A stretch of DNA of 32,000 nucleotides from Zygophlyctis sp. KS116 (GCA_054661495.1 BAAFSQ010000052.1:20091-52090); one strand, 5' to 3'. Shown: positions 18,018 to 28,936, numbered from the stretch's first letter. Numbers and translations are program-made. Notes: generated by a model not told the origin, from the letters alone.

Positions 18018-19405
18018 TTAACCCTCTTGTCCGAACTCTGCCGTCCAGTTTACATACTTTTCCAAATCACTACCATTCACAGAGGGTCTAACAGTAGATG
18101 CGGCTCTTTGGAAATCATTATATATCAATTCAGGCTCAAGTAATTCATCCGATCCTATACTAGTCCATGATTTCTCTTCGGCCTTGGGATCTCCAGGTGA
18201 ACATGGAGTGTAATGAGGTGTAATTTTAGTAGAGTCAGATCTACTAGGAGCCATCACCTATACTTAATAAATAAAATTACTTTTTTGAAATGTGTAGCCA
18301 TTTGAACTTTACGTACAGGTTCCATTAGGGCATCACGAACCAAAACTGCTATATCAGACCCAGAAAATCTAATTTTTTAAATCTTTTTAAAATTACCCCT
18401 CAGTTTGATCAGCCAACAACTTGAATTCTTTAGTCCCTAGTTTACATGGTGTAGAACCTATATTTAAAGACATCATTTTAGCTCTAGCATGAGGATCAGG
18501 AAGAGGAATGTAAATACGTTTTTCAAATCTTCTACGAATAGCAGGATCTAATCCCCATGGAATATTTGTAGCACCCAATACTAAAATTCCTTGAGTATCA
18601 TTTCCAACACCCTGCATTTGAACTAAAAATTCAGTTTTGATTCTTCTTGAAGCCTCTGATTCTCCTTCTCCACGTGTTCCACACAATGAATCTACTTCAT
18701 CAACAAAAATAATTGCAGGTTTTGACTCTCTAGCTAAAGCAAACAATTGTTTTACAAGTCTTTCAGACTCTCCCATCCATTTTGAGACTAAATCTGAAGA
18801 AGAAACAGAAAAAAAAGTAGAATTAGCTTCAGTAGCAACTGCTTTTGCCAAGTAAGATTTCCCAGTCCCAGGAGGTCCATATAGTAAAATCCCTCTCCAA
18901 GGAGTCCTTTTACCTGTAAACAAGTGAGGAAATTTTATAGGTAAAATAACAGCTTCTTTTAAAGCTTCTTTTGCAGAATCCAGTCCTGCAATATCTTCCC
19001 AGTGCACATTAGGTTTTTCTTCTAAAATAGCACCAGCGAGCGCATTTCTCATTTTTTTAACTTCAGAATCTACATTATCATCTTCCGAGTCAGCATCAGC
19101 CTTTTCCTCTTTATTCCCTGATGAAGCAGACGCAGGAACCATTTTCTTTTTTGATTTATTTAAATATTCCTTTAATTTTTCAGCTCTTTCTAGATACTCT
19201 GTGAATTTTTTACGAATTGTTTCCTTTGTTTTTTCATTTTTTTCATATTTAATTGCCAACATAAAACATTCCAGCGCCGCAGAGTACTGCTTATACGCTT
19301 CCTCGTAATTATTCTGTGCATCCAATTCAGTCGCCTTTTTTACAATATCAATAGCCTTCTATTATTTAGAAAATTCCAAATTACCTCTAAGAAATTGCTA
19401 TTCAT
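18018..19405 (-). CDS. VPS4: ESCRT AAA-ATPase Vps4
   Basis: MIT domain, Walker A GPPGTGKS, Walker [23 protein letters not shown] and C-terminal EFGQEG. Introns 19359-19384, 18369-18396 and 18258-18280. Confidence 0.97.
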
Positions 19406-19522: not shown

Positions 19523-20006
19523 ATGGTTGCGCAAACAACGTCTGAATCTCAATTCAAGAGCCTTATTAGCAGCTCAAAGGTAACGCTGGTAGACTGGTTT
19601 GCTGAATGGTGTGGGCCTTGCAAGGCGGTGTCTCCTGAACTGGATAAATTGGAAAAGGAGTTTCCAAATGTTCAATTGTATCTAAATCTTATTAATTTCA
19701 AGTATAAAGGTAGATGTTGATAAATTCCCAGATCTAGCAGCTAAATATTCTGTATCGGCAATGCCTACTTTTACGTTTTTTAAAGGAAATTCGGTTTTAA
19801 ATACAATTGTTGGCGCAAACGTTTCACAATTAAAATCTACATTGGCTCAGTATGGATCAGCAGCCTCTTTAAATAGTGGAGGAAGAGTATTGGGAAGTGG
19901 GAAAGTGGCTCAGAATAAATCTAGTGCTCAGAATGGAAATTTGGTATTTTATGGTATAATGGGTGCATTCATTCTATACCTATATTTTACTAATAATAAA
20001 GAATAG
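19523..20006 (+). CDS. Thioredoxin with a C-terminal transmembrane anchor
   Basis: WCGPC active site, VSAMPTF, intron 19678-19702, and tail LVFYGIMGAFILYLYF followed by five polar residues. Confidence 0.9.
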
Positions 20007-20031: not shown

Positions 20032-20274
20032 TTAGATTGGGCTGTGAGAGTCTGTACAAGATTTGGAAATTTCAGAAATTTCAGATTGGAAATCTAGATT
20101 CCATTCCATGCTTTCCTCTGTAGATGCAGATGCAGATTTAGAAAAATTAGGTGGGGATTTCTTAGATCCCTTACATGGACAGAGAGAGTTTACTAGGAGG
20201 GGGGAATATTTAATTCTCTTGGGATCAGAGAGTGGTACAAGCATATAGGATACAGGGGTCTCATAATATTGCAT
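20032..20274 (-). CDS. Possible small protein (80 aa), unknown
   Basis: ATG-initiated ORF filling almost the whole gap between the thioredoxin and PAS genes; no recognisable domain. Confidence 0.35.
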   Translation of the reverse strand: MQYYETPVSYMLVPLSDPKRIKYSPLLVNSLCPCKGSKKSPPNFSKSASASTEESMEWNLDFQSEISEISKSCTDSHSPI

Positions 20275-20291: not shown

Positions 20292-23200
20292 TTAAATGTC
20301 ATTCAATTCAGAATACACTTTTTCAATATACTCAACTATTGGTTGAGATCCGGCAAGGATTTCTAAAGGTACCATGGCAAATACTATAAAGTAAATAATT
20401 ATGTCTTACAGGCTCGGTTATGACGGATTTCGGCAGAAAATTCATTAATCAAGGGTCTAAAGTACCAGATTCCAAGAATTATAGTATAGAAAAGTCCAAT
20501 TAAATAACTGGCTAAAAAGGCGGATTCGGTATTGCTTCTAGAGGTTTTAATTCTTTGATTCACCAGATTCTTGATATAGCGAATGGCTTCATCACCTTCA
20601 TGAGAAACAGTTTCTTCAATAATCCAATAATTTTTAATAGGAAGTGGGCCTTGAACAATATTTTTAGCAGACCCAGGAGCTTCAGATAATTCCCATAGGT
20701 TGGAGCCCACATAATTCATGAGGATTGATATGCCCCTAGTAGCATGAACAGAATAGTCGGATGGTAGAGCTAGTTCAGGAGGTGTCTTTACATCATCCGT
20801 TTTAAACTTGTCATTGCATCGAGTTTCCCGCGCAGGAACTTCATATACTATACTGTTTTTATAAACATATGTTGAATTCATTTTAGGAGTAACAGTTATC
20901 ATATCATCTTGACAAGAGGTGTAAACTTCAGTAAGCTGATTTGGATTGTATAACAATTTAGAAATCTCAAAATCGGCCGCATAATCATCTGTCAATCTCT
21001 TAAATTCATAATATAACTATGCGTTAGAAAAAAAAATTCCTTACATCATCTGCTTTTTCTGCGATTCGATCTGATGCGGTCTTATAATCGTCCCAAACTG
21101 GAGCAAATACGGGTGGTGCATTTTGTGAAGGATGCCATATAGGGATGGATTCGAAACGAAGAGATGAGAAAAGGCTATACAAGACTAAAATATCTCTATA
21201 TCGTTCAATCGTCAACTGAGATGTCTGATTGTCAGTATACCGCCACGCACAATGCACGATTATTGGAAGAGCAACAGACAAAAGGGCGGCGAAAGTTATT
21301 ACCAATAATCTTACTTTACTGTCATTTACCACCTCGATAGCATCATCAGTTTTCATTTTTCTAGATTTTGCCTTACTAAGAGCCAATTTTTGTGCATCAC
21401 TGAGTTCACGATTATCTTCATCGTCTGCGTCCTCCCCTTCTTCTTTTTCTTTATAAGTGACATAAACGAAATCCCAAATAAGTGATTTTGGCACAAGGAG
21501 CAAAAGTTTAAGAATGTTGCTTCGCTCTCCTTGAAGTTTTTTCATTGCAGGTAAGATAAAAAAGCCTACAAGAATGAATGGAAGTATAATTAAGATAATA
21601 GCAAAAACAAGGTGAATTATAAGCTCCAAATTTTGATTGCTAATCACTTGATCAAAAATAATTCCTTGCAAAGATTTGATTTGTTCATCAATTATGTGTC
21701 GATTTTTAGCCAAGAAGAGAAAATCCAATTGTGCAGCAATATCTTTCACATCGTGCTTCTTGGAGAGCTTCACTACTGCATCTACGACTTTAGAAGATAC
21801 AAAATCAGCCCAATTAGGCGATTTCTGTGTTACTAGCCGATCAATCCCATAAAATTCAAAATAATCAAATGAAGCAGTATACTGAGAATCTAAAATATCC
21901 TTCTCTCTTCGAATTTTGGCGTAAAATTCTGTTAAGACTCCCTGTGTCTGTTCCAAAGTTTTTGCTACTTCCACTAGATGGTCAGAATAATGTGCCTTTT
22001 CTACAAATGTGCATTTCTCTAAAGTTTTCTTAGCACCTGTATCGATATTCGTTTCACTCTTGATAGCAAATTCGTATTCTTCACCGAACGTACAAGGCCA
22101 GTAATTCTGGGAAATATGGCTTTGAGTCATGTTTAGAAGAATATCATTCGAGATTTCCTCTAATAAAACAACATCGGCCGAGTATATCGCATCGTAGATT
22201 TCACGCCCCTGATCTAGTAGCAAATCGCTAAATACAAGATATCCGTCAAATTTGGGAAGTGCATTCAAAGATATCAATGCTATTACAAATGTTGAAATAT
22301 AAATTACCAAGGTGATAAAAACCGAATTCATAAAAGATCGATTGATTCCATCAATTTTTGTAGTATTCTTGATATATGCAAGTTTAGATTCTATTGACTT
22401 AACGAGAGATTTATCAACGGACGTCTCTTCATCTGAGTCTTCATCCGAACTACAAGATTCATCCACCGATGAATAACTTTGGGCAGTGGGATCAAGGTTT
22501 GCATTACTACCAGATTTACTCGGTGCCTGACTATAGCCTGTAGGGACACTAAGTGTTATATTTTGATCTTCTATTTTCTCGGCCTTTTCGGATCGGATAA
22601 AGAGAGAATCGACAAATGCTAAAAGATTAAAAACTAATATTACCTCTATCCATACGATTCTCAATACTAACATGTCGAATACGTCCTATAAATGAATTTC
22701 CATCAGAATTTTGTATTTCAGCTACCTAAAGATAAGTCTTTTAAATTTACTTGGATTTCAATAGGTAATATGGAACCATCTCTATGGATAGTACTAATGA
22801 CCCTTGGTATTCCAACAACGCGAGCCACACGGGTATCATTATACCTTTGCAGATATCCATCATGATTTGCTGCTATTGACTCGTGCATAATGCACTTTAT
22901 ATTTTTCCCCATAATTTCATCTGCGTCAAATCCAAGCAGGATATGACCATCTTCATTGAATGTGAGAATCGTGCCGAGATCATCAATCGAAACGACAGCA
23001 TCGGTCGTGGTTAGATCACGCACACGCATTAATATAACCTCTGAAGATTTCATTGATAGAGCAAATGTTACAGGGAGAAGCCCATAAGATTTCGTCACCA
23101 TCAATATGTAAAAATTCAAGTCGGTGTTGCTTAAGGCCAATGACATCCAATAATTTTTATCCTGGCGATTATTTCCACTTATTGGAGGTATAAGAGTCTC

Positions 23201-26200
23201 TATCGGTTGACCTATGTATTCTTCATCGATATTTTCTGACATGTATCCCAGCATTTTGAATACTGCTTCATTAACTGATATGATAGTCCCGTCCTTTTTC
23301 AATTCCAATACACAATTGTCATCAAAGCCCATTCGTTTGATTTTTGAAGCCGAAGAGATTGTATCAACTCTCCTTATCAATCCTTTAAAAAGAAGATTAT
23401 CATCATTTCCCGTCTCGGATTTTTGTATAATTGCCTTTATCTGCACAATACTACCATCAGCATGAATTGCAGGTAGAGTGCGGCCATCAACTGATCGAAG
23501 GATGTTTGAAACCTTTGTACGTCGATATCTTTCCAAAAATAAATCATGAACTAACTTTAGTACAATTATATAAAATACACATATTATAAGGAGGTGGCAT
23601 AATATTTTTAAGATTCATGCCCATAATGTCTTCTTTTCTATACCCAAGTAGACTTGTCACACCAGAATCAACATTTTGAATCATACCAAAGCCATCAATA
23701 AATATAACTGCAGTTAATTTACTAGTGTCTCTAATAACTGCTGAATAGAAACGATCTGATCCCACATATTCCTCTGTAACGGTTAATGAAATTGGAACAA
23801 CAGAGCCGTCCTTTCGACGACCAGGTACATTTCGCCCAGCTGTTCCAATAACACGAGCTTCTCCTGTTTCTTTGTATCTGCGAAGATAAGATTCATGATT
23901 GGCCGCATATGCGTCTAGCATAAAAACGGTAATGTTAGCTCTGAAAACTTCCGCTGCCTTATAACCAAACATATGTTCAATACTTTTTGAAATCATAATG
24001 ATCGTCCCGTCTTCTGAAATTATAATTTGTCCCTCATCATTGCTGACTGGAACGGCAACAAGAGTCCCTACGAAAATGCGCTCGCCAGTTTCCTTTCTTT
24101 TTTCCTGAAGGGAAAGCATAAGAGGGAAGCCATAACCTAGTCTGTGCAGCCCAAACAAAGCTCTTGGAGGATGCCCGATTACCTTAGCATTTCCAGTAGC
24201 TTTATACTTATCTAAAAACTGATCATGACGTTCTCTATAAGGTGATGGGACTAAAAGCTTAATGTTTCTAGTTATGAGTTCACTTCTTAGCCATCCAAAT
24301 AAATTTGTCACGGCCTTATTAACCTGTTCAATAGTCCCCTCTTCATTAATAGATATAACTGCACGACTGTCTATTCCTCCATCTGAGATTCCTGAATCAT
24401 CGTGTTCGCGAGCTCTGAGCTGTTCAGCACGACGATGGTATCGTTCTGCTTCCTCTCCATTTTTCATAACTAATTCCAAAAAATATGCATAAGAACTCAA
24501 AATATATAATTGCTTTGGAAAACGAACAATGAGAGACTATGGATCAGTTAGCAGATTTTACCTTATAAGTGGCCAAAGCCTTATTTGTAGCAGAATCAAC
24601 AGCTTTTGAGGCCTCGAGAAATTTAGAAATCTTGATTTCAGGATTAAGAAATAACGACCAAAAATCACTAATTGCCTTGATTGCGACAGAATTATACTTT
24701 TGCGCCTCACTTTTATAAGACTAATAAGAAATTACACGTAATACTTCTGAAAATCACCGAATTGATTTAGGTTGGTTATGGAAGAATTAACATCACCTGC
24801 GATTGATACACTTTGCTTAGAATCTTTGATGCGTTTTGAAATTAAGAACCGAATATAATAAGAAGTCTCCAAATTCAGGGCAGTTTCGAGCAAGTCTATA
24901 AATGCAGATGAATCTGCAGATAATGTCATAAGACAAGATGCTCTGCGTATTCTGATAATAGCTAGATCAGGAAATGCTGAATCAGCCATGCGATATAATC
25001 GATACGCAGCCTCCACATTTACTTTATCGGAGGTATTGAACCATAAAAGACGACCTATTATTTCGACCGAAGTAGTGTCAGCTCCAAACTTCTGCAAGAT
25101 CTGGGGCAGATACAAATATGGATTTCTCTTCGCCCCTTCAATCAATTCTTCGGATTTTTTTGTAGTAAATTTAGCCAAGTATAGTTCCTTTGACTCAAAT
25201 TCTGCCTCGATTTCCTGACAAAGTCCTGTTGCAAAAGCTAAAATAATGAAATTATACAAACCATACCTTGGAAAACCAAGTACCTATATTGAATGGCATA
25301 ATATCCAAACAGAGCAATCGGTATCATTCCTTAAAGTAAGTAAAAACGAGTACCAAAAATTAGAGCGAAATCGATGAATCTCGATGTTACAAGATTGTAT
25401 TCCATGTTGTTTGCGACAACGAACGTAACGGCTGCACTCCACCACAATGCAAATGTTAACGCTCCGAGTATTGAATTGCTATGGCGATTCTAGCTAATGA
25501 AAAGATAAAAAATACTTGATAAGGTAAATAATATATCAAAAGACCCGGTAAAATAGTAATGGCAATCCAATTAAACAATGCCTCCCACCAAGTTCCGATG
25601 ATTTGCCCAATCAAATATTCATTTATCGTCATAAATATGATGATTGAATAAAATGCTATGTTGTAAATAGGGGTCACAGTAACAAACAAATCCAGGGGTA
25701 CCGGAAAAAGGTTGACATAAGCTACTGTTGAAATTAGCATAAGCCCAATGAGTATAATAGCTGTTATCGTTCCAATAATTAGATAAGCCATATTTGACGA
25801 GCCCCAGCAGTCAATCCTACAGGTTATATTTAAAAATTACGCTTCACCATACTGCTCAAAAGGGAAGAGCTTTTGAGTAGCTGGATTGCACCACCACGGA
25901 GTTGCTAATAATTTAAATCTAAAAATCAACAAAAAATATATAACCCTGCTGGAAATAGGATTCTAAGCGCTATATTGAAAGAATAGAATAGAGTTTTGAC
26001 TGCTATTGGATTGGGTTCGTTATTTTTGTAATATGATCTAAATACTATTCCGGCATTGATCAAGATCAAAAGCGTTATGGCAAAACTGGCCCAGAATGCG
26101 GCCTAATATCAATACTTATATATAAAGTACAGTAAAGCTAGACCATGTGGTTAACTTGATCTGAAGCTGTAAATATCGAGCAAAACGTCCCCATGTCGTT

Positions 26201-26479
26201 GTATATGAGCCATATCCGTAGCCTGTAAAATAAGATCAGTCTCTAGGAATTACCATCTTTTATTAAAAATAATCAAAATATACCATGTACAAAGAAAGGA
26301 ATGATCTGGACAAAACTTAATATCATTACTGCCACAGCTGGCAACCAATTGAGATGCGCTAGCGCAGGAAACGCGGTCGGATATATATCATATATAGTAG
26401 ATGACAATGCAGACTCCACCTTTTTTTTTAATTTCGTGAATTCTGACTCCTCAACAGTTCGAGCTCCTGAAGATGACAT
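20292..26479 (-). CDS. Large multi-pass membrane protein with five PAS domains (TmcB-like architecture)
   Basis: N-terminal multi-TM exons (25.3-26.4 kb), helical TPR-like region (24.4-25.2 kb), PAS repeats (about 22.75-24.37 kb), then further TM helices. Last exon LFAMVPLEIL...NDI* with stop at 20292-20294. Probable ATG at 26479. Confidence 0.82.
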
Positions 26480-26581: not shown

Positions 26582-28936
26582 TTACAATGCTAGATTTTTC
26601 ATTTGTATCAAGTAGCTATTAGATGGCTCAGCATTAGGCTCATCCTCCCATACATTAAAGTAGACGACAAAATTGGCAGGCTCTTTACCCTGCTCCACTG
26701 TTAAAAGTGGGCAGTCTTCCTTATCTTCAAGCTTTGATCTTTTTATGTCAATTGCTCGAAAAGTAAGTTGTGTAACAACATCAGATGCTTCATTTCCCTT
26801 CCATAAAAAAAGGGGACCAGGTCTGCAGTCGAGAATAACAACACAATCTGGGCGTAAATCATCCTGTGAAAATACTCCTAGATATTCAATACTATAATAT
26901 CCTAGGGCACAAGAGCATCTAAAGAATTGGGGAGCGTAGATCGGATTCAAATTGACATTTTCCATATTGAAAGTAGGAAATGCAATCAGAGAAGAATTTT
27001 CAACAATATTGATTGGGATCTCCAATTTTTTCTGGTATAAAATAGATTTACAAATTCGGTATAAATTCGAAGCTTCTGAAATCCCTCGACTCTTGTAGAG
27101 AGTCGCTTTATGATCATAAATAATAAAATGAGAATCAGAATCAACGAGATACGGAATAGGATCACTAACATTCCAAACCCGAACTGTCCCAAACTTTGAA
27201 TCTATTCTTATCCTATATACTTCAGTTTTAGATTGGTTAAGTTGATTCCTAAGCCCTTTTTCATAAGTCACTTCATTAGAAAGATGTGATAAAAGAATTA
27301 AAGGCTCTTTACCAGGGTCAACATGAACAACTTTCATTTCACAATTATATAGAGATTTAACCAACTCTTCCAATTCATGCTGTGTTTTAAAACGAAATGT
27401 TGCATATGCTAAATGATTAACGATGCAAATAAAATACCTCTCCGTGCAGCCTTCCTACCTTTCCAAAAGTATAAAACACATTCAAGAGAAGTTTCATTTT
27501 TTGAAGACTGCGCCAAAGATGGTTCTAATTCTTCTTCAATAACCTTGTAAACGCATAAAAAGATATACGCCTCTTTCATGAACAATAATCCTGCTTCATC
27601 TTCTGGGACAGAAATGAATTTACCATTTGAATGTACAAATACACTCATCTTTACTAAAAGTGAATTAAAACTCGATAATGTGCTTAGCAAAAATGAATTA
27701 TCTCGTTTAATAGCTTGGCCACCTGTAAAAAAAGATTCAATGTCCATATGAATCCCTTCCAATTTATTCAATTGAACTAAAAATAATTAAACTCAAAGAT
27801 TTGATTACCTTTATCATCCCAAACATGAACATCTTCCCAATCACTAAAATATAATTTAAATAATTCTGGCTCATGTTCTTGCATACATCTATCCAAATAC
27901 AACCATTTTGGACGAATTTTTAACGGAACTATTTTCTAAAATCTTAAATTTCCTTTAAATTACAGTTAAATACTCTGTAGCCATTAATTTTTTCTCTTGA
28001 GATGCATTTTTACCAATCCATAGTATCAGTATAGATCCTGAATCTACAATAAAACAACCTTTAGAATCTAAAAGCCCTTTTTTAAGTTTTTTAGAATCTA
28101 GAATATCATTCTTTGGATCTCCTAGTAAATCCTTTGGGACTCTATTAGTAAATCTACGAGTTTCAATACCTGTACAAAACAGGACCATCCCATTTTTCTT
28201 TAGTAGAAAGATTTCTAGCCTCTAAAGACTCATCACATCCCAATAAATCCAAAAATCTTGAAACTTCATGTCCTTGTTCTTGTTCTATGACTCTTGCTCT
28301 CCCTTTTCTCTCATTCCTATTAATCCTTTGACATATTATTTTCCCTTTTAATCTCTGTTGCTTTGAAGAATCTCTTCCATTCCATAAAAATATCTCTAGT
28401 CCATTATCTAGTATAAAAACATTTAAATTTGACAAAACTGTATATAATGGTTCTAAATTTTCCAATGCCCAATCATGAACTTTAAATAGTAATAAATTCC
28501 AAGTTTTATCTTGTACAGGAAACAATCCACTTTGAGTTGAATACGTAGCTTCAGAATATTCAAGATTTGGAAATAAATCTTTAAACGCAATAGATTCTTC
28601 ATTAGGCCCAACTTTAATAATTTGAGAATTTCCTCTTAGAAAATCCTTTAGTCCGACCGCATACATTGCACAACAAAACCTTTTATCCAATTGTGCACAT
28701 GAACCAATCCAAGTATAAATAAAATAATAAATTTCATCAAGTCTTTTTACAGAATTTAGAATTAAATAACAATCACCAACACAAAATTCCCCATCAAATT
28801 CAACCTGTCTTGGTTCCAATTGATTAATCTCAAAAACAACAATTCCCTCTCTTCCAATATTTGTAAAATAATCACTGAAATCCAGGGCCTTGAAGGGACT
28901 CTGCAATGAAGATGTTGACACTGGCGAAAGATGCAT
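26582..28936 (-). CDS. Gelsolin-repeat protein most similar to the gelsolin half of Flightless-I
   Basis: LDFSDYF...IYTWIGSCAQLDKRFCCAMYAVGL, VFILDNGLEIFLWNG...RINRNERKGRA and FFRCSCALGYY...FSQDDL correspond to recalled FLII segments LDYSEFF, KINKNERKGKA, LFRCSNEKGYF and FCQDDL. Confidence 0.82.

Follow-up and report, generated by a model that had tools for sequence, protein, structure and literature searches.

A candidate gas receptor of the TmcB/TmcC family with four FixL-type PAS domains, encoded by a gene with ultra-short introns in Zygophlyctis sp. KS116

The stretch of DNA analyzed here (the window) comprises 32,000 nucleotides of Zygophlyctis sp. KS116 (GCA_054661495.1, BAAFSQ010000052.1:20091-52090), and our subject is the large gene that occupies its minus strand from 26479 to 20292. 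This interval holds a single gene of 15 exons and 14 introns with one open frame of 1,928 amino acids; the limits given for it in a first-pass annotation, made from the sequence alone, prove to be exactly the ATG and the stop codon once the 14 introns are removed. Its product is a new member of the TmcB/TmcC family, which is already catalogued but little characterized, and consists of eight predicted membrane helices, a presumably cytosolic region of helical repeats and five PAS domains, and four further predicted membrane helices. Four of the PAS domains (PAS1, 2, 3, and 5) carry what is, at the level of sequence, the complete FixL heme-pocket signature. Taken as a whole, the protein is probably a twelve-helix receptor that senses gas through heme-binding PAS domains and signals to partner proteins.

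The PAS array provides the principal evidence for this view. All searches used single exons or homologs as queries, the joined translation serving for coordinates, hydropathy, and motif positions. Pfam recognizes PAS domains in the two large exons (E 1.7e-21 and 3.7e-11), and in phmmer searches of all PDB chains the matches to these exons at E<=0.001 were without exception FixL or DosP/YddU-type heme PAS domains, with FixL the best, at a level of similarity that chance could not give. The top match of both PAS2 (E 2.5e-19 over 104 residues, an alignment that covers the His, both Arg residues, and the RKDGS..P strand) and PAS5 (E 3e-15) was 1d06, the heme domain of R. meliloti FixL, which was followed in the ranking by B. 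japonicum FixL (BjFixL) and E. coli DosP/YddU-type heme PAS proteins. The window His aligns with the FixL proximal His in helix F-alpha and the window Arg pair with the FixL Arg pair; an equivalent of BjFixL Arg220 is present in PAS1, 2, 3, and 5, and one of Arg206 in PAS2, 3, and 5, with Lys at this site in PAS1. Established structural work on FixL has the distal Arg contacting both bound O2 and a heme propionate. The loop preceding this residue is spaced exactly as in FixL in PAS5 and carries one or two extra residues in PAS1, 2, and 3. Two introns interrupt the array. Splicing of 23578-23551 within PAS3 yields PPPYNMFHDLFLERY, matching the PPPYNQYHDMYLERY of unspliced homologs, and splicing of 22750-22726 within PAS5 yields PIEIQ/VAEIQNSDGNSFIGRIRHV, the expected last two strands of a PAS domain. 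The first-pass annotation had described five tandem PAS domains, four of them FixL-like and bearing the His and the fourth in the series without it, and had quoted motifs for the His-bearing domains, including PAS3 as spliced over 23551-23578. Pfam, phmmer, and the motif positions bear this description out, as do the PDB alignments and conservation among homologs; the quoted motifs are present, and the His codons were located in PAS1, 2, 3, and 5.

A survey of about 3 million PAS domains identified the F-alpha His as the chief determinant of whether heme is bound in the FixL/DosP cluster (PMC10468136). Given this rule and the conserved His, heme binding by PAS1, 2, 3, and 5 can be inferred with some force, and heme and gas sensing by these four domains is, as far as sequence goes, well supported. 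The four His motifs are kept domain by domain and position by position in homologs of 45-86% identity (P0002-P0006 for PAS1). The persistence to about 45% identity of the His and distal Arg in all four domains, and of the first Arg in three (PAS1 having Lys), argues against a different account, in which the PAS domains are not gas sensors; heme would then be a structural or redox cofactor or the means of sensing heme availability, or another ligand would be bound, and the protein would be mainly a scaffold or a receptor for an extracellular ligand. We consider this account unlikely, though it has some basis: about 40% of the FixL/DosP cluster lacks the His, presumably having other roles (PMC10468136), and the His has been lost from PAS4. 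The number of His-bearing PAS domains ranges from zero to four among family members, and distant members keep the layout with zero to three by strict pattern, indicating that heme is not essential to the family.

The kinship with TmcB and TmcC (Dictyostelium 'tiny macrocysts' B and C; PF25474) follows from the helical repeats and the membrane parts. The TmcB-type TPR is divided between two exons, 24720-24547 (24.9 bits, profile positions 28-78) and the start of 24536-23547 (17.0 bits, profile positions 80-123), each of which falls below the Pfam cut-off of 27 bits, while the rough sum of the adjoining pieces exceeds it; paralogs with an unbroken frame, 47-66% identical over the TPR region, score 85.8 and 85.3 bits. 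Exon by exon, the window gene matches P0002-P0009 and its paralogs with the parts in the same order, and proteins from Blastocladiella, Cyanophora, Diphylleia, and Chlamydomonas incerta have the same layout. Like TmcB and TmcC, the window protein has a TPR followed by PAS, is flanked by membrane helices, and lacks an enzyme domain, an architecture found in every long relative that was scanned. The chytrid clade differs from other members of the family in having five PAS domains, four with the heme signature, where others have fewer. Both this kinship and the existence of algal relatives had been suggested in advance, and PF25474, the shared N- and C-terminal membrane parts, and the algal proteins described below substantiate them.

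The genome (12.7 Mb in 1,175 contigs) contains at least six further loci in which a TmcB-type TPR is present and the parts follow the same order. When a paralog served as query in a word search, the matches were relatives from metagenomes (53-86% identity) and one protein of Quaeritorhiza haematococci, and in all of them TPR_TmcB and PAS are the only domains. A HMMER search of 1.84 billion representative proteins, using a profile of the C-terminal membrane module (the part left blank by Pfam), matched only 86 proteins, those with names being from the chytrids Quaeritorhiza, Clydaea, and Lobulomyces, from Blastocladiella emersonii, B. britannica, and Rozella allomycis, and from the glaucophyte Cyanophora and the CRuMs flagellate Diphylleia. 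Proteins of Chlamydomonas incerta and Edaphochlamys that came up in an additional search have the TPR_TmcB, PAS, and membrane layout of the window protein; neither of these two algal relatives contains a motif by the strict His pattern. Judged by these lineages, the family is old and occurs widely in protists and in zoosporic fungi. No Dictyostelium sequences were returned by our searches, and the link to TmcB and TmcC is by the name of the Pfam family only. Most of the lineages found are flagellated, but Dictyostelium has no flagella, and a connection with zoospores or flagella is only suggestive. A 'TmcB-related' protein of Chlamydomonas has been found in a cilia proteome (PMC11244166).

In the N-terminal membrane bundle, the loop that joins helices 3 and 4 contains a pair of conserved Cys residues; the bundle aligns with relatives from chytrids, Blastocladiella, Cyanophora, and Diphylleia; a word search added a single further chytrid protein (Phlyctochytrium). 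An AlphaFold model of the homolog P0074:1-375, built from 35 rows that included the window exons, consists of eight long helices, with a predicted local distance difference test (pLDDT) of 82.4 and a predicted template-modeling score (pTM) of 0.81. Foldseek found no match to this model in the PDB at E<=0.001; the best VIA-align score was Z 9.1 over about 100 residues, from generic three-helix pieces of helix bundles, and the TM-score against the ESM Atlas was at most 0.44. As modeled, the bundle is thus a confident, compact fold with no match to a solved channel, transporter, or receptor, and it may be a new fold.

The C-terminal module, for which no Pfam family was found in any of 55 members, is modeled differently. 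In the AlphaFold prediction for the homolog P0016:100-887 (55 sequences, window exons as rows; pLDDT 84.7, pTM 0.76), the membrane helices are greatly prolonged and run on into two helical bundles on the outside, and each bundle bears small beta hairpins in which the conserved cysteines lie. Foldseek again returned no PDB match at E<=0.001. With VIA-align the top match was the NIT domain of NasR, a double four-helix bundle (4akk_B; Z 15.5, root-mean-square deviation 3.6, 257 residues), which superposes across both loops, followed at Z of about 9-11 by the periplasmic sensor domains of TorS, PilJ, PcaY, McpN, Tsr, and several kinases. A feature search of the ESM Atlas with the C-terminal exon gave unnamed eukaryotic clusters only, with a weak hint of TmcB and PilJ, and BLASTP between the two halves of the module did not support an internal duplication. 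The structural matches are suggestive of a receptor-like module, as regards fold only. Judging from Cys pairs conserved in the presumed outside loops, the two loops of 220-230 residues in the C-terminal module would lie outside the cell and the TPR-PAS array in the cytosol. Splicing at 20409-20384 restores a C-terminus common to six homologs.

These models also bear on the proposal, raised in the first-pass annotation, that the protein is a gated channel or transporter. A pore or carrier controlled by the heme-PAS domains could be built from its twelve membrane helices, in a single chain or an oligomer, an arrangement with some appeal for a protein that has so many helices and no enzyme, and whose N-terminal bundle is modeled as confident and compact with no function assigned; PAS domains do regulate some eukaryotic channels, for example those of the KCNH family (PMC10468136). 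However, neither Foldseek, VIA-align, nor the Atlas brought up a solved channel or transporter resembling the bundle, and this lack of a structural match lends the idea no support, while the four C-terminal helices of the homolog model run on from four-helix bundles of receptor-like appearance. The channel proposal consequently appears rather improbable.

The presence of membrane bundles on both sides of the PAS array and the lack of a visible output enzyme were likewise anticipated and have held up, with eight helices before the array and four after it. In none of the exons did Pfam detect a catalytic family, whether kinase, cyclase, phosphodiesterase, or another, and no catalytic domain was found in the full-length relatives (Quaeritorhiza, Blastocladiella, Cyanophora, Diphylleia, and Rozella). 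The HisKA and HATPase_c domains that follow the heme-PAS in the FixL kinase are absent from the exons and from the full-length relatives; having no histidine kinase, the gene product is no FixL ortholog. A possible output is suggested by P0093, a protein of 1,067 amino acids from a JGI metagenome in which four membrane helices with long loops precede a class III adenylate/guanylate cyclase domain. The motif formed by its last helix and tail matches that of the family (hhalign 92.6%, E 4.5e-7, 62 residues), and the protein is possibly a relative of the C-terminal module that is coupled to a cyclase. PMC12750705, citing Muramoto 2005, describes Dictyostelium tmcB as a regulator of the cyclic adenosine monophosphate (cAMP) pathway in sexual development and reports that tmcB rises after 24 h of hypoxia; the functional data on the TmcB/TmcC family (macrocyst size and the cAMP pathway, as cited there) are limited to Dictyostelium. 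The P0093 motif and the Dictyostelium genetics make cyclic-nucleotide signaling the most plausible downstream pathway, on weak evidence. The genome has about four class III nucleotide cyclase loci (contigs C71, C219, C80, and C199); none of the four adjoins the receptor gene, and the membrane module was not seen in the stretches examined.

In the receptor reading that we favor, PAS1, 2, 3, and 5 would each bind one heme b through the conserved His, and binding of O2 (or NO/CO) would shift the distal Arg and the FG loop in the manner of FixL. The resulting change in the PAS array would pass to both of the membrane parts that anchor it and from there to partner proteins in the absence of a built-in enzyme domain, most likely feeding into cyclic-nucleotide signaling, and a second input, from outside the cell, would come through the external four-helix bundles. 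A more elaborate version makes the protein the representative of a new class of eukaryotic receptor, enzyme-free and with two inputs, whose tandem NIT-like outside bundles would bind, for instance, nitrate, nitrite, or another small anion or metabolite while its four heme-PAS domains read O2 or NO, and whose partner cyclases steer zoospores (aerotaxis, encystment), possibly from the flagellar membrane; this scheme is speculative, and we think it doubtful that all of it will hold.

Several points weigh against the receptor reading. Heme and gas binding, like the membrane topology, are deduced from sequence and models, and the gene model from comparison of genomic sequences. Both structural models are of homologs and not of the window protein, P0074 being only 10-25% identical to the seven window exon pieces and P0016 26-33% identical to the window exons. 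The Z of 15.5 to NasR is, for a helical bundle, only modestly above the values that unrelated helical proteins can give, and the Pfam families NIT, 4HB_MCP, PilJ, and TarH were found neither in the window exons at E<=0.1 nor in the 55 aligned members at E<=1. The linker between PAS5 and TM9, whose equivalent in the homolog model has a pLDDT below 50, appears disordered and would be an odd path for a conformational signal. The cyclase link is weak, comprising one borderline match (P0093 was first recovered at E 2.4e-4 in the C-module profile search) and genetics in a distant organism.

Between 26479 and 20292 the open reading frames of the minus strand change phase every few hundred bases, and splice junctions were set by comparing the frames with paralogs from the same genome and with public homologs, with which the junctions agree. 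All 14 introns are GT..AG, and 13 of them measure 24-29 nucleotides; the first measures 61 nucleotides, or else is made up of introns of 27 and 31 nucleotides flanking an exon of 3 nucleotides, which would be the ATG at 26256-26254. The introns start with GTA, GTT, or GTG, end in AG, and are uniformly ultra-short. An alternative position for intron 8, 24744-24721, leads to a premature stop, and 24735-24710 was adopted.

The gene model could be compared with a close relative, scaffold_238 of an environmental metagenome (ENA ERZ19571628; L021), which is 95.8% identical in DNA over 6.2 kb and has the same gene order, including the upstream gelsolin-like neighbor; at this identity it represents a sister strain or species sampled in nature. 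The two sequences differ at 1.9, 0.8, and 8.3% of first, second, and third codon positions, respectively, and at 7.0% of intron positions, with 144 synonymous and 54 non-synonymous codon differences. Of 19 gap positions, 14 fall within the gene model, all of them in introns and none in exons, and the other five in the flanks; the splice dinucleotides are all kept, and the relative has no stop. This combination of codon-position pattern, intron-only gaps, kept splice sites, and absence of stops indicates one gene under purifying selection along its length. That the region instead comprises two or three separate genes, for a membrane protein, a soluble PAS protein, and a second membrane protein, as the fragmentation of the region by prokaryote-style gene calls on metagenome contigs (P0018, P0030) might suggest, is scarcely credible given the uninterrupted 1,928-residue frame through 14 canonical introns, the pattern of differences from scaffold_238, the lack of start or stop signals at the domain borders, and the single-chain proteins with the same parts in the same order from Blastocladiella, Quaeritorhiza, Cyanophora, and Diphylleia (the last from a transcriptome). 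The coordinates of exons and features are given in the table.

Table. Exons and predicted features of the receptor gene (positions in the window; aa, amino acid positions in the 1,928-residue translation)
Feature	Position	Strand	aa	Remarks
Exons 1-5	26479-26284, 26222-26131, 26102-25945, 25918-25841, 25816-25516	minus		
Exons 6-10	25489-25354, 25329-25267, 25237-24736, 24709-24562, 24536-23579	minus		
Exons 11-15	23550-22751, 22725-22644, 22618-21045, 21016-20410, 20383-20292	minus		
N-terminal membrane bundle	25298..26374	minus	36-331	Eight helices predicted by hydropathy; spans six short introns
Helical repeats ending in TmcB-type TPR (PF25474)	24369..25235	minus	343-614	Predicted cytosolic; introns 24735-24710, 24561-24537
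PAS1	24036..24368	minus	615-725	FixL-type; His aa 662 (codon 24227-24225); distal Arg aa 683 (24164-24162)
PAS2	23715..24035	minus	726-832	FixL-type; His aa 772 (23897-23895); Arg in RRY; distal Arg aa 793 (23834-23832)
PAS3	23318..23714	minus	833-955	FixL-type; His aa 879 (23548-23546); Arg in ERY; Arg aa 901 (23482-23480)
PAS4	23003..23317	minus	956-1060	Asn at the His-equivalent site; PAS_9 and PAS_8 match exon residues 100-163
PAS5	22666..23002	minus	1061-1164	FixL-type; His aa 1107 (22864-22862); Arg in QRY; distal Arg in GIPR
Linker	22323..22665	minus	1165-1270	Ser/Asp/Glu-rich, predicted disordered; spans intron 22643-22619
C-terminal module	20468..22322	minus	1271-1879	Four helices; loops of 218, 82, and 233 residues
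TM9 (membrane helix 9)	22322-22266	minus	1271-1289	
Outside domain 1	22265-21612	minus		Between TM9 and TM10
TM10	21611-21555	minus	1508-1526	
Cytosolic loop	21554-21309	minus		Conserved ILKLLLLVPK motif and acidic run
TM11	21308-21252	minus	1609-1627	
Outside domain 2	21251-20525	minus		Holds intron 21044-21017
TM12	20524-20468	minus	1861-1879	
Cytosolic tail and stop	20292..20467	minus	1880-1928	49 residues; conserved motif HNRALFAMVP...QPIVEYIE; after intron 20409-20384

Set beside known systems, the PAS domains are closest in sequence to those of rhizobial FixL (1d06, 1dp6, 1xj4) and E. coli DosP, with which they share the His, both Arg residues, the IIG..R loop, and the RKDG..P strand. 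FixL and DosP, however, couple one heme-PAS domain to a histidine kinase or a cyclic diguanylate (c-di-GMP) phosphodiesterase, whereas the window protein has four in tandem in a eukaryotic, enzyme-free, twelve-helix setting. Among eukaryotes, the isolated PAS domains of Chlamydomonas FXL1 and FXL5, which may or may not be TmcB-type proteins, reportedly bind heme and O2, with loss on mutation of the His (Murthy et al., FEBS Lett 2012). The outside loops of the homolog model resemble the NIT domain of NasR (4akk) and four-helix-bundle (4HB) sensors in forming superposable bundles continuous with membrane helices, but there is no detectable sequence similarity to these, and both bundles have additional beta hairpins that hold conserved Cys. 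Further differences are that two separate loops of a single chain supply the bundles, in place of one periplasmic domain, and that no HAMP, kinase, or methyl-accepting domain follows.

Some observations on relatives and neighbors may be added. Contigs C555 (L009) and C557 (L010), about 4.4 kb each, hold closely similar copies of a paralog, with an intronless frame of more than 1,070 amino acids cut by the contig ends; allelic variation, duplication in the recent past, or a split in the assembly could each account for the pair. In Quaeritorhiza haematococci, the family members HK102_003405 (P0008) and HK102_003406 (P0040) are adjacent on one contig, indicating that tandem duplication occurs in the TmcB/TmcC-type family; P0008 is seemingly one helix short in the N-terminal bundle, probably through an annotation error. 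In the window, a gene for a protein with gelsolin repeats (26585-27454, minus strand; stop 26584-26582) ends about 100 nucleotides upstream of the receptor ATG. Fusion of the two genes was considered and rejected in view of this stop; the sole candidate intron leads into a TGA, and the paralogs begin with Met at the same place. Beyond the receptor stop, an open frame of 80 amino acids begins 17 nucleotides on (20032-20274, minus strand) and could represent either a short gene or a portion of the 3' untranslated region. Further downstream lie two unrelated genes, one thioredoxin-like with a WCGPC motif and apparently two exons (19523-20006, plus strand) and the other encoding a Vps4-like AAA ATPase (18393-19325, minus strand).

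To our knowledge, FixL-type direct heme sensors of O2 are well understood only in bacteria, and none has been characterized in fungi. The gene described here and its paralogs provide a concrete set of candidate gas sensors in zoosporic fungi. The bacterial-type sensor look of the C-terminal module and the occurrence of its tail motif ahead of a cyclase are pointers to the way in which an enzyme-free receptor might signal, and with the family present in several deep branches of the eukaryotes, what its members do becomes a question of some breadth.

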